From positions 166,253 through 230,252 of the forward strand of contig MU619264.1 of assembly GCA_025201805.1 (NCBI GenBank): a stretch of 64,000 nucleotides of DNA, given 5' to 3'. The position numbers and the translations under genes were made by a program. Every line of letters starts with the position of its first letter. Position 1 is the first letter of the stretch. Below are positions 1 through 23,683 of this stretch, piece after piece. This stretch comes from Parasitella parasitica NRRL 2501. Lineage: Eukaryota; Fungi; Mucoromycota. The notes beneath the pieces were generated by a model. The model had not been told where the DNA came from, searched no databases, and was given only the letters and a program-made list of their open reading frames with translations.

Positions 1-430
1 GCATAACTTCTTGGTTATGATTGTTGTTGAGTGCATGCATCATGAAAGTAAATTGGCTGTTCAAGTGCTGATTTGTCCGCAAGACTCACGACTGATCTAG
101 CATTTGTTCTTCTTCATCATTAATAGCAATAAGGCATCTTTTGCGACCATTAAAAGCAAATGACATAGTTGACACATTATTAACAAGCTAAATAAGGGTT
201 GATATGTATTGTTTTTTAATAGAATAAATCGAAAATGTGAAGGTTTATACATGATCTCTAACTTCAGGGCTCTAATAATAACGAGATTTCGTGGCAAGTC
301 AGGATTTAATTTTACTGTCTCAAATGTAGGGAAATATTCAGTTATTACCTTCTGAATTAGGAAGGTTTTCGACTTTTTTGCATTTTTAATTGAAGGAAAT
401 AAAATCTTTTTATTTCTATAAATATTTTTT

Positions 431-1604
431 TTAGTTATGATACTGCATGTCTGATTTGCGCCTGATCTTGATTGGCAGCAATTTGAGACTGAAGAATCTC
501 TCCCTCAGTATCCCAAACGCATGCTCAATTTTAATCCTCATCATAGAAACATAAGTATTGAACTTCTCATCGTCGGGAGACATTGGCTCACCACGAGGCT
601 TCTAGCGAACAGGAACCAGAAATTTGAAAGCCTTGTACCCGCCATCGCCAAGCACATACTCTTCCCAAGAAAAGTGGTCTGAAGCATACTTGTAAAGGTT
701 GCTCTGGGTCAGAACCTTCATGTCGTGGGAGCTGCCAAACCAACCACAGGCAAAATGCCTAATCTTTCTGTTGTGATCACAGACAGCCTGCGTGTTCACA
801 CAATACCCACCCTTCCTGCAGTAGAGTTCATCTCGTCTGGCCCAAGATGGTGCACATGCCAGGTTAATGGTGGAGCCATCAATGAACCCTGCCAGGTTGG
901 GGAATCCCAGTCGTTGCTTGTTGTGTCCCACAATTTCCTTCTCGGTTGCCGTTGGCCAGTAAATGAATTGATCTTCAAATGTCATCATAACCTTGAAGAA
1001 ACGCAAGGTGTAGTTGCGGATACTGCCAACTAGTGGAGCACATTTAATCAGTTACAGCGTTTGTTACATATATTTATTATAGACAGTTTTACATACCACT
1101 AACACCACATCCTCTCGCCAATCGACTTTGGGAAGCACCATTACCGTTACTTCCTAGCCGTTCAAGGACAATCGACACTTGCAGCTTAATATCTTTCTGT
1201 GGTTTGATGCCGCCCTTGCCCTTGTAAAGATCATGATCTTTGGTCAGATTGATTAGCTTCATGAATGAGGACTTGCTCATTCGCAACTCCTCCTTGTAAT
1301 CATCTTCATCAAGTTCATCCAGAAACTGTAATCTTCTCTCGGCTGAGACAAGCTTTGGGCGCTGATGCTGCCTTTTGAACAAATATCTGCTCTTTCTAAC
1401 CTTGTTGAGCCTTTGTCTTGCTGGCACACCCTTTAGAAGCTGCAATTTCAAACAGGTCGCAATATTTTTAAAAAGGCTGCCACCTGTTAATATTAATGAC
1501 ATAGCTTCATTCAGCTTAATCAAGCGTTCCATCTTCGCCTCTTCTGCGATGGCCCGTCCTTCCAGTAAATACTGAACTTCTGATTTTAATGAGTATCTTG
1601 GTAT
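431..1604 (-). pseudogene. PIF/Harbinger-family DDE transposase (DDE_Tnp_4/HARBI1-like), inactivated
   Basis: Exons 1604-1097 and 1029-431 joined by a GT-AG intron (1096-1030). Motifs: ELRMSKSSFMKL, GFIDGSTI (D1), GWFGSSHD, YVLGDGGY (D2), RIKIEHAFGILRERF (E). In-frame TAG at 604-602 interrupts the catalytic domain, the likely start codon reads ATA (1604-1602, then PRYSLK), and the C-terminal CxLHN motif is missing. Confidence 0.9.
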
Positions 1605-2039
1605 AGTTATGAAGATGTGTAAAAGAGTATATTTCCTACCTGTTTCTGAATCATGTTTACATTAAAGCTGCCAAATATTCATTGACGCGTTGTTCTGGCT
1701 AATCAAACATTTTGTTTTTACTTGAGTTCAATTGAAAGAATTAACAAGAAGAAACGGTAATAATTTTTTTTTATACACTTTTGCTATCCACTCGAACTAC
1801 AATTTTTTCATGGTTTCTGAAAAAAAAATTCAAGTAAATGATAAAGGTCATGGTGATTGTGATAATATATACTAGGATTTCTGATAACAAACCTTTTATT
1901 TTTGATAAAAGCTGAGAAGTTTTTGAGAGATGAGAAATGTCTCCCTAAGGAATATTTCAAGTAGGATTTCTATTTTAGATTAAAAATGCCCAAGGATAGG
2001 GAACATTTTAACATGATATGCGAAATTGCGATGCCCTAA
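431..2039 (-). mobile_element. Truncated PIF/Harbinger DNA transposon with its putative 5' terminal inverted repeat
   Basis: Transposase plus GCGAAATTGCGATGCCC (2020-2036), read as GGGCATCGCAATTTCGC on the minus strand, immediately flanked by TAA (2037-2039). GGG-starting termini and TAA/TTA target duplications are typical of Harbinger. The partner TIR was not found in the window. Confidence 0.65.
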
Positions 2040-4758
2040 TTATTGATCAAACAGCCATTGTGCAGGAGCAATATAATAGAAATTTTTAAATGAATGATTG
2101 TTTGGATTTTTATAATCCTATTTTTAAATGCAATGAAAATTCCGTATCAACATTAACGACATGTACTTCAGATTCCTGAAATTGAACAATCACCTAACGG
2201 GCCACAATACAAAATTGTTTGAATTTCATAATTGATAAATTATTTCAGATATTTACGTTAGATCTTTGACATCTAAATAAACCCAAATATTTAGACAAGT
2301 CTATAGAACTGCATAGATATTTAAACTAAAAAATGGGTAAACCACAAAACCATCAAGGTATCAAAATATCAAACTGTATCTACTAATAAGGCATTGATTT
2401 GTACATATCTGTCGAATTATGCATTTACACAATAAAAAATCATAGCAGCTATTGACAATCTCTATTTTTGTAACTTCGCATTATCATTTCATGTTACATC
2501 TGTCAAGTCAGCATATCCAATATCAAGGAAAGAATATAAACTCGGGAATCGCTATAAAGGACGGGTTGGTGTACAAAAATGTGTTTGCTATAGCGAGTTA
2601 TCCTCTATTCAGAATTTGATACACTACAGTACTTTGCCTGGGACTTGGAACCTACCAGAAGCCTATTAAGAAGCTTAAATTTTGTTAGTAAAATTACCCT
2701 CAACCTCAATCCCAACTTCTATTTTACTTTTTATGTTACATGTTAAGCATTAGCATCACAAAAAAAAGGAACTCTTGAACTGAAATTAAGCATTATTATA
2801 AGCAACAATGGTAAGAGGACTTCTCTGTCGCTAGCAATTAGCAGCCTATGAATTATTCACAAATAACACGGGGTTATTACAGCAAAACATTGTATTCTTT
2901 AATTATTCTCTTCTGCTTCCAGCTCGATGAACCCCACCTGTTTGATTATATTACTATAAAGAAATATATACTTATGGCATTAAAAATACTTATTTTATAG
3001 AGTTGTGTTATGTACCAGAATTGATATTGACGTGATACCATCTCCAGATGGATGTTTTTTACAGCTTAAAAGTAAAAATTTTAGCTTCGTATGCCATTTT
3101 TTGATTGATTTTGATAATTAAAAGTGCTCTAAAAACGCCAGAAATAGTATCCATTAGGAAAGAACTATTTTATATGATTTAGGTGCAATTTGAGCATGAT
3201 TTTTTTTTCGATGCAAAATCACGAATTTTTTCAATTTTTTCCTTGTGTCTACACATTGAAAATCGTCGATTATGCATTATTCACGGTTTTGACCTCAGAA
3301 ATGCGACTTTTTACTACAGCATATATTAGAAGAAAATGATCGTAGAAGACCATTTCTTGATCTGAAAGACTAGAAATGTGCTCTGATTAAGCAAAATATC
3401 AACTTTTTCCTCTTAATCTGTTTTGAGGTTTTCTCAAAATAATTTCTTCCATAAGCATACGGGAATTATGAAATGATATCAGCGTATAGAGTGCCCAAAA
3501 ATACAGCTATTATCATAGACTGACAGCCGTGGTATGCATAGTATCAGAGGATGATATCTTGCCTTAAAGAAGTAATTTTGTTTTCTAATTGTACAAATGG
3601 AGTTTCTGAAAGAATTTTTCCTTCCTGATTTTGAAAGCATTTAATCTCCGCTTTCAAAGAAAAATGAAGAAAACAATAGCTTCGAGGTCATAGCTTACCC
3701 AATTCAAAAGAAAAACAATTGAAACCTAATTTATTTAAATTTTGTGCTTCTTGGCTTTCTAATGGTAGTACTCGCATGTCTGTGCCTAGCCTGACGATAT
3801 CACGCTCCGATTTTGAAATATACTTTGCTGAAAAGAGTTAAAAAAATCGCTACCTACATCTTATGTCAACTTAAAATGTACAAAAATTTGCTCTAAGCTA
3901 CGCAGATATGTTATCAAAAGGTGTCTTATAGTCTAATGCATTACTTCGCATTACATTTTTTTTGTGTTTGAGATCGCTAAACATTGTTTTCTTACAGTTT
4001 TTGTCTTTTTTCTGACAATAGCACACTAAAGTTCGCTTAGGCCAAACAAAAAAAAACAAGCGCCTAAAACCTACGATGGCTTTGCAAAGGCACACACTTT
4101 TGAACCATTCCAATATTATGGAAAAGATGGCACAGGTTTGACTAGCTGTTTTACTGTGCAACTGGATATGGAGAATCTAGCCTGGTACTTATCTGACAAG
4201 ACCTTCTACACTAGAAGACGCCAGATCAACCGAAGGTATAAGAAAATACCAGAGAAAAGGAAACAACCTGCCACAAGGATAACACACCCATTTATAAAAA
4301 ATTATCTGTATGAAAATTTATGAAATAACAAGGACATAAATTTGTTTATCTTGAACCTTGCTCTCCGTTACTGAATCCAATCAAAGGTTTTTCAACCAAA
4401 GTCAATAGACACGCTTACGCCCAGAATCACAGATATTTGTCAATAGACAACCGCAAACTTTTGAAAGACTACCTTGAACTTTAAGAAATTAAAGATATGA
4501 TGTAGATAGCTTATTACACAACTCATTCTCTTTGTATTTTTACTATGAATGAAACAAAGCAATTACTCTTTTTCTCTAAATGCGAAATCCACACTTAAAA
4601 TCTTTTTAGGGAGACACTTCTTTCAGAAACGTTAGCTTTTATTGGAAATAAAAGGTGTTATCAGAAACCCTAATGGGCATTATCACAATTACCATGGCCT
4701 TTATCATTTACTTAAACTTTTTTTTTTTTTTTTTTTTTTNNNNNNNNNNTCAGAAACT
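1812..4758. repeat. Diverged ~170-bp inverted repeat pair (about 1812-1980 and 4575-4758)
   Basis: The reverse complement of 1812-1980 aligns by eye with 4575-4758 through shared blocks TTAGGGAGACA, AGCTTTTAT, AAATAAAAGGT, TGTTATCAGAAA, ATTATCACAAT, CCTTTATCATTTACTT, poly-T and TCAGAAAC. Confidence 0.85.
4740..4749. other. Assembly gap (10 N) following a poly-T run
   Basis: Ns in the sequence. Confidence 1.
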
Positions 4759-5952
4759 GCAAAATGATAGTATGGTGAAAAAAACTTAACCTTCGCTTCA
4801 CTACGGCGAATTTTTTCGGCTCTTCGTTCTAATGGGGGTGAACTGCTCGTCTTACATTTGATAAAACCAATTTAGCTTTGTGTCTGGTTTATTTAGTTCT
4901 GTTATCCATCCATAAATTTTCTGCGTGCATTTAATATTGTATTTGGTGTATTTCATAAAAGATTACGCAGTGATTGCGGTATCTTTATTAAAAAACTCTC
5001 TATAATATTATATTATGTCTAGGCTTCATTCAGCTCCGAGTATTTCTTTTATCTCCAAACCGTAAGCTTTGAACTTGATTTCATCTCTCGTTTGTTGTGT
5101 TTCTTTTGATAAATGTAGCAGCTCATATATAAATGAGTTGTTATTATCTTTAATTTAATGATGATATACGTTTATGATGAAAATAAATCAAAACAAATGT
5201 ACCTATTATTTGGGAAGATCAGTAGTCATTTAGTCTAAAATATAAAGCTACAGTAAGATGATAAAATATGCAAAGCAAGCAGCATCGCATCACATTTATT
5301 CCGATCTTCAATATACTACTGTAAAAAACTAGATCTTCAGATGTCTAAATTTGTTCAACAGAAACGATTCAGTACCAAATCTTGAAAGGCTCACCATCTA
5401 AACCAAAATTTATACGACTTTGATAATTATAACCGTTGAAAGTATGACGGTAGGCAATCTATAAATATAGCCGAAAAAAAAAAGTAATGTAACCACTCAT
5501 ATCCATCTTTAAAAATTTCGATTAAATTTGACCTTGATTAGTTTGTAATATGGAGAAACTAGGGCATTTTGTAAGCATAAACTCAATTTGCAATCATTCA
5601 TCCTATATCGGTCAGCTGTCAAAATCAGACTACAACAATTGAATTTCAATTCTAGGCAGCAAAATCTATAGATTAATCAAGGTATCTATGAAACTAGCTA
5701 AACAAGAGGCTATTCTTATGGCACATCAGCGATCAGCCGAGTAAATGTATACAGATCTAAGTTGATACTTCACCATCTGTCAGATCGGAAATTGGAAACT
5801 GGCTAATGACGTCGCAAACTTCTATAACCCCAGGCTGTGAATAGGCTAATTGAAAAATAACATGAGTGAAAAAAGAGAAAAGCGCCGCCTTCAACATCTC
5901 TCTTTATTGTTCTCCCCTCTCTCTTTATTTTCTCTAATCTTTCTATATAAAA

Positions 5953-6585
5953 ATGCTTCGTACTGCTGCTGTTCGCACCCGTGTTAGTGCCACCCGTGTC
6001 ATCGGTCGTCGTAACGCTTCCAGCAATGTTACTGTTCAAAACATTGAGACCCGTTGGAAGACCCTTTCCACCGCTGAGCAGAACACCATTGCTAAGCAAC
6101 TTGAAGAAGCACAAAAGGGTGATTGGAAGGCCCTTTCTCTTGACGAAAAGAAGGCTGCCTGTAAGTAAATTCAACCATACGCTGCGCAATCATTTATTGA
6201 TGTTGTATTTAGATTATATTGCCTTTGGAGCTCATGGTCCTCGTGAGCCTTTGACCAAGCCTGGCCATGGTATGAAGGTTCTTGGTGGTGTTGCTGGTGT
6301 CCTTGCTGCATCTGGCGCTCTCTTCTATGCTATTCGTGTTAATGGTAAGTACAATTTCTTTTATTTTACTACCGGTGGATGATTGTGTTTTGCTTTGTTA
6401 CGGCAATTTTTTTTTTTTTTTTTTTTTTTAATACTTTTTTCACTGTAGGTCAAGAAACCCCTCACACTATTAGCAAGGAATGGGAGGAACAAACCAACGA
6501 GTATCTCAAGAGCCAAAACTCCAACCCTATTTCTGGTATTTCCTCAGAAGGATACAAGGGAACTGGCTATGTTGTCAGCAAATAA
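5953..6585 (+). CDS. COX5: Cytochrome c oxidase subunit 5 (COX4 family), mitochondrial precursor
   Basis: Exons 5953-6160, 6213-6344, 6449-6585. Arg-rich presequence, then QKGDWKALSLDEKKAAYYIAFGAHGPR, one TM helix, and TISKEWEEQTNEYLKSQNSNPISGISS. Confidence 0.95.
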
Positions 6586-7465
6586 ACAACATTTTAATAT
6601 TATTTACAACTACACTCAAAAGAAAATTATATATCACGTTTTAGAGTTTTTTGCTTGTAAAGCGTCATGTTTGTTATAAAAGAATCAAAAGCTATTTATA
6701 AATATATAAAAAAAAGGGCATTCTCATTACAGAAAATCGGATAATATCACTTTCGAGGTTATTAGTAAGGTCAAAAACCTGACTGTAGCCATGGGATGTC
6801 GACAATAGCGTCAATTGACATTCAAAGACATGTCTGTTGTTTATATTCATATTTAAAAATGGTTTGCATGTCGGATAACTCTGCTTAGATTGCCGTAATC
6901 CATGATTTTATATACCGTATCTTTCAAAATAAAAAGAGACACTATTACAGATCTAAGGTCCTGAGGAGTATTCAACTATTATATTCTATGTGGTATGGTT
7001 AATAATATAAGGAAAAAAAAGTGCCTCAAAAACCATCAATAAGTCTAATATAATGGTTGAGATGCCTTTTGGATGAACTAAAGCTCTGCATTTTCAATAA
7101 ATTAGGCTTTACAAGGCCTTGAACCATCAACCGAAACGACATTCTTTGATAGGAGATCCAGTACGTTATCAGATGATACACAATACTTGCATGGGATCAG
7201 CTTGTATTATAGCTTTAATTAAGGTTAGTTTATCAAAGAATAAGCTTATTCTTCAGGGATTATGGCGTGTCTTTCAGTCTTTACCCTCCAGCATCAGCCT
7301 GTTTATTAGTTGATAATATTTGAGAAGAAACAGATCAACTTTGAGTAAAGCTTTTCATAATCTGACTGTCAAATCGCAGTAAAATTTATCTCGGTAGGGT
7401 TGTAGTGAAAGCAAATTTTATATTTAAACCTTGTTGATACTTTATATAAAACCCTCACTAATACC

Positions 7466-8228
7466 ATGTCTCAACAACAGCAAGTGGACATTGGCGATTT
7501 AGATTTGTCCTCTCTTCAGCAAGTCAAAACTCAATTAGAAGAGGTTTATATCGGATCAATAAATGAGAGATGATCGAATTTGAATGTTAAAACGAACAAA
7601 TAGGAATTAAACCATTTGACTCAATCGTATAACAAACTTAAGGGCGTTCAAGGACGATTCAAAGACTGTGTTGACAGTGTTGATTCACTGAAAGCGGAGG
7701 AGGCTGACGGTAAGTTTGTCCACGCAACGTACGGCGTGAAGAAGCAGATTTCTGACGCGTTCACTAATAGATAAGACTATTCTTGTACCCCTCACATCAT
7801 CTATATCCTTTTTTTATTTCATTAATTAACAGCCACTAATAATATGACAGCGTGTATTATATAACATGTCCTTAACCTATATCACACCTCTATGTCCCAG
7901 GTAAATTAAGCAATGTTAGCAAGGTCATTGTAGATGTCGGTACTGGCTATTACGTTGAAAAGGTAATCCGCCTTGATGAACATGCAAATACTAATCACTA
8001 AAATACATGGAATCACAGTCTGTTTTGGACGCTGCAAAGTTTTATAATGACAAGGTTGGCTATGTTAAGAAAAACCTCAGCACGCTTGAGAAAACCATTA
8101 CAGACAAACAAAGCACGTTGAGAGGTAACTTCTGAGGAGCTTTAGACGCTAAGAACGCTTATACTAAATGATTGCATGCAGCCATTGTCAATGTTATGCA
8201 GGATAAAATACAAAAGGAACAAAAGTAG
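7466..8228 (+). CDS. GIM5: Prefoldin subunit 5 (alpha type); not in the ORF track
   Basis: Exons 7466-7543, 7604-7709, 7771-7802, 7888-7962, 8019-8124, 8182-8228 splice in frame to [35 protein letters not shown]...[15 protein letters not shown]...[14 protein letters not shown]...QKEQK*. Confidence 0.95.
7803..7887 (+). other. U12-type (minor spliceosome) AT-AC intron, 85 nt
   Basis: 5' splice site ATATCCTTTT (7803), branch point TCCTTAAC (7869-7876), 3' end CAC (AC at 7886-7887). Removing it restores the conserved LVPLTSS|LYVPG. Confidence 0.93.
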
Positions 8229-8432
8229 ATGCTCTTTTTTTTTTTCAGGAACCATCATTCTTTATGAATTTGCTTGAAAGTGCACATCCAAAAAATAAAA
8301 GCGGGAGTTCATTTTTTGCTAATTTGATTTCGTGTGTGGAGCCTTCCTAATGAGTGTTTATAAATTGATGGCACCCCTCTCCTTAATTTCTCGCTTCTTT
8401 TTCTCTCTACACATAATTCACTGTGGGGGAAA

Positions 8433-23059: not shown

Positions 23060-23683
23060 CTGGTCTGGCTCTAATTAAGCACCATATACCTTTTTTTACT
23101 TGCATTTATTATCTTTAAGCTAAATCAAACAATCACATATGTACAAAACTATATTCACCTTCCCCTTACAATCCTTTCCGTATTGACAACAACTTTTCTT
23201 ATGGCAGTTTATTTTATCCTTATTTATGTCTACATATACCTGAAATCTACTAATAAAAAATTATGTGTAAACAACACAAAACGCACTGGCATTATTTACA
23301 ATGTGATACAATACAATAGGCTGACTTCACGACAATTCTTTCAATAGATGAAAGTTCCCCTGCGACGACAACATTGAATCATTCGCTAAAAAGGGAAAAT
23401 ATACATGTAATCAGGGCACTCGCTTCACGTTGCAAATGACGACAAGACTGTAAAATGTCCAAAATCAAAATACAGTAGTTTGTTACATATTTAGAAACTA
23501 CGGTAATTTGAATATCCTTTTTGTTATCATCGAATTAGAACTGGATAAGACAAAACATGACAATGAATAAATTCGAGGGTTAGCTAAGATAGCAGCTGTT
23601 CAAGTTTTCTTTTTTTTCCTTTTTTTTTTTTTTTTTCATTCTACAAACCTATTATATACATTGCATATGATTATCAAATCATC

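Follow-up and report, generated by a model that had tools for sequence, protein, structure and literature searches.

A probable U12-dependent AT-AC intron in the prefoldin subunit 5 gene of the Mucorales fungus Parasitella parasitica

Gene and exon-intron structure

The gene for prefoldin subunit 5 (PFD5) of Parasitella parasitica (Mucorales) has its coding sequence at positions 7466-8228 of the 64-kb stretch of genomic DNA analysed here, hereafter the window, and the interval 7803-7887 (+) is the third of its five introns. The layout below was assembled from the window itself, from a public RNA contig that is described in the next section and from P0157, the NCBI model of this assembly ('prefoldin, alpha subunit [Parasitella parasitica]', 147 aa).

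7466..7543, +, exon 1, from the ATG; translation at position 0 of P0157, GT-AG joint after 7543 in the RNA contig
7544..7603, +, intron 1, GT-AG, 60 nt; RNA contig joint 7541/7602, cut moved by +2 to 7543/7604
7604..7709, +, exon 2; RNA contig, translation in P0157
7710..7770, +, intron 2, GT-AG, 61 nt, phase 1; RNA contig joint 7708/7770, cut moved by +1 to 7709/7771
7771..7802, +, exon 3, 32 nt; sequence, RNA contig and P0157
7803..7887, +, intron 3, U12-type AT-AC, 85 nt, phase 0; RNA contig joint 7802/7888, motifs read directly
7888..7962, +, exon 4; matches to PF02996 and to PDB 6nr8 chain 5, P0157
7899..7900, +, decoy AG acceptor within exon 4; in frame with the donor at 7710, giving ..ADGKLSNV.., and unused in the RNA contig
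7963..8018, +, intron 4, GT-AG, 56 nt; RNA contig joint 7962/8019
8019..8124, +, exon 5; RNA contig, Pfam and P0157, single-copy in the genome
8125..8181, +, intron 5, GT-AG, 57 nt; RNA contig joint 8124/8182
8182..8228, +, exon 6, coding part, ending in a TAG stop; sequence, RNA contig (which runs on to 8306) and P0157

The translations of the six exons are all found in P0157, in order and without differences, and the relatives of P0157 carry the UniRef name prefoldin subunit 5. Exons were searched singly, while the full-length queries were public proteins, namely P0157 and P0007 of Benjaminiella poitrasii, the latter having been found by way of the exon 4 piece. In Pfam, this piece matched PF02996 (Prefoldin) at 30.4 bits (cut-off 23.2) and exon 5 matched the same family weakly (16.2 bits); exons 1 and 2, as pieces too short for such a search, returned no Pfam matches. 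In the PDB, the exon 4 piece aligned over SS/MYVPGKL with chain 5 of 6nr8 (prefoldin subunit 5; E 7.5e-8), and the PDB matches for exon 4 at E <= 1 were exclusively prefoldin subunit 5 chains. Judged from these matches, the gene is an orthologue of PFDN5 and not of the other alpha subunit, PFDN3/VBP1. Prefoldin 5 is an essential chaperone subunit.

The next gene downstream of PFD5 occupies the window from 8433 onwards (+), about 200 bases past the stop codon. In Benjaminiella and in a Mucorales-like metagenome contig, the gene that follows PFD5 carries a formin Drf_GBD domain, which suggests that gene order around PFD5 is conserved.

Excision of intron 3 in RNA

A single 503-nt contig of a public run (X1), compared with 7300-8400, aligns with the window in six pieces with 0 mismatches; X1 contributes this one contig from one study, and the label of the run as RNA is a guess. 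The contig joins 7802 to 7888, skipping 85 nt that begin with AT and end with AC, and the joint has no alternative placement ('both' = 0). The same contig also removes the four GT-AG introns. Since five introns are missing from it at exact splice sites, we regard it as a spliced transcript, and since exon 5 has a single occurrence in the 32.8-Mb assembly, a retrocopy is not its source. The junction 7802^7888 predicted by the sequence-only reading of this DNA is therefore present in a transcript contig that is 100% identical to the window. Fully spliced RNA is the sole transcript form seen, at high word depth, in assembled contigs of a kind in which splicing efficiency and rare isoforms are invisible.

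Splice signals

Exon 3 ends in ...ACA TCA TCT at 7802 and exon 4 opens with CTC TAT GTC CCA GGT from 7888; excision of 7803-7887 keeps the reading frame across the two exons, and unspliced read-through of intron 3 meets a TAA at 7827-7829. The intron opens with the U12-type 5' splice site ATATCCTTT at 7803-7811 (+), identical at nine of nine positions to /RTATCCTTT, and contains the U12-type branch site TCCTTAAC at 7869-7876 (+), whose branch A at 7875 lies 12 nt from the 3' end at 7887. The 11 nt between the branch motif and the intron end hold no polypyrimidine tract, and the terminus is AC at 7886-7887 (+). U12 branch sites typically lie 10-20 nt from the 3' end, without a polypyrimidine tract. 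No GT stands at the end of exon 3, the nearest one upstream being at 7784-7785. The three U12 hallmarks that had been claimed for this intron (donor, branch site ending 11 nt before the 3' end, and AC terminus), as well as the claimed lack of a GT donor at the junction, can all be read in the DNA.

Taken alone, the donor ATATCCTTT occurs at chance level, with two matches in the 64-kb window against 1.78 expected. The combination of donor, branch site and AC exceeds chance genome-wide, with 31 matches against 10 for a reversed-pattern control. The second ATATCCTTT of the window, at 23512-23520 (+), is intergenic and without a branch site, and was set aside as a chance match.

Introns at the same site in relatives

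Homologous loci from other organisms and from metagenome or Logan contigs were compared at the position of intron 3, with the following outcome.

Benjaminiella poitrasii (L009): AT-AC, 100 nt; donor ATATCCTTT, branch site TTCCTTAAC
Metagenome contig, Mucorales-like (L010): AT-AC, 93 nt; branch site TTCTTAAC
Blyttiomyces helicus, a GC-rich chytrid (L013): AT-AC, 121 nt; donor ATATCCTC, branch site TCCTTAAC, branch A 13 nt from the end
AT-rich metagenome eukaryote (L021), 849-969: AT-AC, 121 nt; sole good branch motif 32 nt upstream of the end
AT-rich metagenome eukaryote (L022), 833-1020: AT-AC, 188 nt; sole good branch motif 46 nt upstream of the end
Animal-like contig (L023): GT-AG, U12-like, 157 nt; GTATCCAT; TTCCTTAGC
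Close Mucorales relative, 6.8-kb contig of Logan SRR25833176 (L012), 940-1010: intron absent, TCATCT/CTTTAT contiguous
Thecamonas trahens (L014): no intron at the site

When three Mucorales introns are aligned, conservation within the intron is confined to the donor ATATCCTTT, CTTAAC and the AC terminus. The close relative L012 retains the four GT-AG introns of PFD5 and has lost the U12 intron precisely. In the two AT-rich metagenome eukaryotes, a long T-rich tract separates the TCCTTAAC-like motif from the 3' end, an unusually long distance for a U12 intron.

Most of the 150 representatives continue across the intron site without interruption, as expected where minor splicing was lost; many of them also read into intron 4, which suggests that they are genomic ORF calls rather than cDNA. 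Six loci (L015-L020) were ORFs lacking introns or contigs resembling cDNA, drawn from metagenomes and Logan; uninformative on introns, they were discarded as intron evidence. A literature search for prefoldin together with U12 in Arabidopsis returned nothing useful.

Judged by its position, the PFD5 intron is inherited: other Mucorales and a chytrid have an intron at the identical phase-0 site, ahead of [L/M]YVPG. Comparison with PFDN5 orthologues, which had been put forward as a check on the intron position, returned same-site U12 introns in Mucorales and a chytrid, and in vertebrates by the indirect route that follows.

Comparison with vertebrate PFDN5

Human and mouse PFDN5 are published as minor-intron genes (PMC6717393, PMC8034651, PMC10853781; also PMC12332006 for mammals). 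The donor of the PFDN5 minor intron is given as TCT/GTATCCTTT in both species (PMC6717393, supplement file 3), and the mouse branch site as TTTTTCTTAACC (PMC6717393 supplement). A set of vertebrate-like protein fragments (for example P0100, P0052, P0104 and P0112) was compared as peptide text. In the mouse-like fragment P0100, FFLTPASQ stands directly before MYVPGKLHDVEH, in keeping with the mouse branch site TTTTTCTTAACC lying shortly before the same exon. A further group of vertebrate-like fragments has ..VLD....Q ahead of MYVPG, as TCCTTGAC...AG would give. From the supplement motifs and these peptide read-throughs, it is very probable that vertebrate PFDN5 carries an intron of the GT-AG U12 subtype at the very site seen in Parasitella.

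The two introns share a gene family, as exon 4 has its best PDB match in human prefoldin subunit 5, and a TCT codon followed by the U12-type donor core TATCCTTT (PMC6717393 supplement); in the vertebrate-like fragments, too, the intron is placed directly before MYVPG. The two nevertheless differ in subtype and length, the vertebrate intron being GT-AG and about 1.6 kb whereas the Parasitella intron is AT-AC and 85 nt, and the vertebrate branch sites, TTTCCCTTAATT and TTTTTCTTAACC, are less perfect than the TCCTTAAC of Parasitella.

On the strength of the shared site, the PFD5 U12 intron predates the split between fungi and animals, the vertebrate part of this argument being the indirect one. 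It has since changed subtype (AT-AC versus GT-AG) and been lost repeatedly; loss has affected lineages that lack minor splicing as well as at least one Mucorales relative, where it was precise. A single U12 site common to a chytrid, to Mucorales and, indirectly, to vertebrates, with a difference in subtype and a precise recent loss, is what lends the intron its evolutionary interest.

Errors in public gene models

The segment VPLT.S[LM]YVPG is kept in 95 of the 120 best homologues and is missing from 24, one more having been flagged just for LYVSG. All 24 homologues without the segment are among the 48 named Mucorales models, so that half of these models (24/48) are wrong. Eleven Mucorales models, including P0190, the second P. 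parasitica model, read ..[D/E]GKLS.., the product of an in-frame GT-AG decoy that corresponds to 7709 to 7901 in the window. Nine translate the 3' end of the intron, and several of them have FLN...Y ahead of LYVPG, the translation of TTCCTTAAC...AC; the donor of the remaining four is the GT that corresponds to 7784. The Blyttiomyces model at NCBI (P0019, RKO89263.1; L013:1201-2065) leaves out the KTVLVPLTNS exon and renders the 3' end of the AT-AC intron as protein. The underlying L013 contig contains an N gap, accompanied by a duplication of exon 3 and its donor.

The expectation of the sequence-only reading that gene callers restricted to GT-AG would mis-annotate this gene consequently holds for 24 of the 48 Mucorales models and for P0019, but fails for this assembly's own model P0157, in which the splice is correct, as it also is in the Benjaminiella model P0007. 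GT-AG-only models delete or garble the conserved LVPLTSSLYVPG segment, and the present gene offers a clean, RNA-supported example. Annotation-based surveys will undercount minor introns in these fungi, and the value of the finding lies mainly in annotation and intron evolution, not in mechanism.

The same decoy raises the question of whether the X1 contig might be an intronless DNA copy, a contaminant or an assembly artefact, with the true mRNA spliced as GT-AG from the donor at 7710 to the acceptor AG at 7899-7900. Such a product would be in frame and is the one adopted by the eleven public Mucorales models, and X1 consists of one contig from one study that was labelled RNA by guess. Nevertheless, an explanation of this kind is barely credible, given that five introns are removed from the contig at exact consensus sites with 0 mismatches and that exon 5 is single-copy in the assembly. 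The alternative splice would, moreover, delete the LVPLTSSLYVPG segment, which is intact in the 95 of 120 best homologues and in the human structure, and is likewise intact in orthologues that have no intron there (L012 and L014).

Minor-spliceosome components in the genome

The sequence-only reading predicted that the genome would encode U11, U12, U4atac and U6atac snRNAs, and a single candidate was recovered for each. The U11 candidate scores 68.7 bits (Rfam cut-off 39) and possesses the 5' end AAAAAGGGC and an Sm site; the U6atac candidate scores 64.5 bits (cut-off 33) and carries GAAAGGAGAGAA. The other two fall just below their cut-offs of 53: the U12 candidate, at 49.1 bits, carries UGCCUCAAAUUAAUGAGUAAGGA and an Sm site and has its 5' UGCCU..AAUGAGUAAGGA intact, and the U4atac candidate, at 47.9 bits, has an Sm site. 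The shortfall of the U12 score is due to a much shortened 3' stem-loop, a feature published for Mucorales U12 along with a U4atac that is difficult to find (PMC4133162).

The U4atac and U6atac candidates pair with one another at -39.1 kcal/mol, against -22.9 +/- 4.4 for shuffles (z = -3.7), by way of GUCCUUUUCAAAGGGG at the 5' end of U4atac and CCCCUUGAGAAGGAC in U6atac. With respect to intron 3, the donor ATATCCTTT is complementary to AAAAAGGG, with which the U11 candidate begins at its 5' end, and to AAGGAG in the U6atac candidate, and GUAAGGA in the U12 candidate complements the branch site TCCTTAAC.

The U6atac candidate has UUUGGCAA in place of the UUAGCAC of the Rfam consensus, which puts a G in the first column of the AGC triad (L002:1501-1638 (-), L005:1501-1639 (-)). 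The U4atac candidate carries a UGCCGAA that matches this change, and pairing is good overall; the pair may represent a compensated substitution in stem I, in a register that is uncertain.

Proteins specific to U11/U12 had also been suggested as a check. Profile searches of the genome covered PDCD7/59K, the SNRNP25 type and zf-U11-48K, and detected a PDCD7/59K domain (35.1 bits) and an SNRNP25-type Ubiquitin_4 domain in two exons (38.6 and 26.9 bits). The zf-U11-48K model (PF05253) found no match in the genome; having 25 positions, it is easily split by introns and is therefore uninformative in a genome as intron-rich as this one.

Interpretation and literature setting

We interpret 7803-7887 as a U12-dependent AT-AC intron, the third of five in a single-copy PFD5 gene, which was inherited, and we place the probability of this reading at roughly 0.93; its dependence on the minor snRNAs is deduced from the splice signals and the machinery. 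The excision in RNA is exact, the signals and the machinery genes are present and the position is conserved, and from the signals and the machinery we infer that the minor, not the major, spliceosome removes intron 3.

AT-AC termini do not by themselves define the class of an intron, and rare U2-type AT-AC introns occur in animals. Intron 3 could on that account be an AT-AC intron spliced by the major (U2-type) spliceosome, in which case the minor snRNA genes would have no bearing on it; the assignment to the minor pathway does, after all, draw on sequence. This possibility strikes us as very improbable. The donor of U2-type AT-AC introns is U2-like and differs from ATATCCTTT; here the donor and the branch site both agree completely with the U12 consensus, a polypyrimidine tract is missing and the branch A lies 12 nt before the 3' end. 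Furthermore, the U12 motifs are the only parts of the intron that are conserved across species, and the genome contains complementary U11, U12 and U6atac sequences.

If intron 3 is indeed U12-dependent, the established model of minor splicing, from which the following steps are taken, predicts that the U11/U12 di-snRNP would bind the donor ATATCCTTT through the 5' end of U11 and the branch site TCCTTAAC through U12. The U4atac/U6atac.U5 particle would then join, with U6atac displacing U11 from the donor. Attack on 7803 by the branch A at 7875 would be followed by ligation of exon 3 to 7888. The remaining four introns of PFD5 would be processed as ordinary GT-AG introns.

Minor splicing in Mucorales is not new, and this intron is a well-documented additional example of it. 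Minor snRNAs and AT-AC or GT-AG U12 introns were reported in Rhizopus and Phycomyces between 2006 and 2010 (PMC2846911, PMC2396436), 205 to 249 minor introns have been reported in Rhizophagus and Basidiobolus (PMC10639083) and hundreds of fungal minor introns have been catalogued (PMC10639083). The premise that few target introns are described in early-diverging fungi is accordingly dated, given published work on Mucorales minor splicing and these catalogues (PMC2846911, PMC2396436, PMC4133162, PMC10639083). The Parasitella intron shares machinery and signals with the U12 introns of Rhizopus, Phycomyces, Lichtheimia, Rhizophagus and Basidiobolus; the cited papers make no mention of this intron in fungal PFD5.

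Possible roles of the intron

It is conceivable that the intron acts as a regulatory brake, with slow splicing, or retention coupled to the stop at 7827-7829, limiting the output of prefoldin 5. Slow or regulated splicing of some animal U12 introns is published (PMC4615840), the site would have been kept since the ancestor of fungi and animals, and retention would truncate the protein. We consider such a role unlikely, however, as the sole transcript form seen is fully spliced (contigs being unable to reveal rare forms) and as L012 dropped only the U12 intron and kept the other four, which argues that the intron is dispensable. Thecamonas, which has no intron at the site, counts as a further loss, as do the many lineages with ORF fragments that run directly across it. 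In addition, the case has been made from a survey of eukaryotes as a whole that much of minor-intron evolution is explained by neutral processes (PMC10639083).

A related proposal is that the PFD5 intron belongs to a small core of minor introns that stayed at one site from the fungus-animal ancestor onwards, including in lineages from which most other minor introns have disappeared, and that it would be retained because minor-splicing activity is coupled to the output of the prefoldin/CCT folding pathway. TCP1 and PFDN5 are both listed as human minor-intron genes (PMC8034651). The proposal is highly speculative and, to our judgement, distinctly unlikely; were it true, the precise loss in L012 would constitute a natural experiment on the coupling.

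Genome-wide occurrence of U12-type patterns

The GT-AG subtype dominates U12 introns in most eukaryotes. In the P. parasitica genome, the pattern for the GT..AG subtype showed no excess (12 matches against 11 in the control). Short strict-consensus U12 candidates are almost all AT-AC in this genome, the 31 matches reported above being those to ATATCCTT..CCTTRAC..AC. Examples of such AT-AC pattern matches, by contig and position, are as follows.

C1:536513-536593
C23:305652-305738
C36:225172-225250
C58:8669-8736
C69:69042-69114
C73:73765-73851
C77:38628-38712
C108:15671-15757
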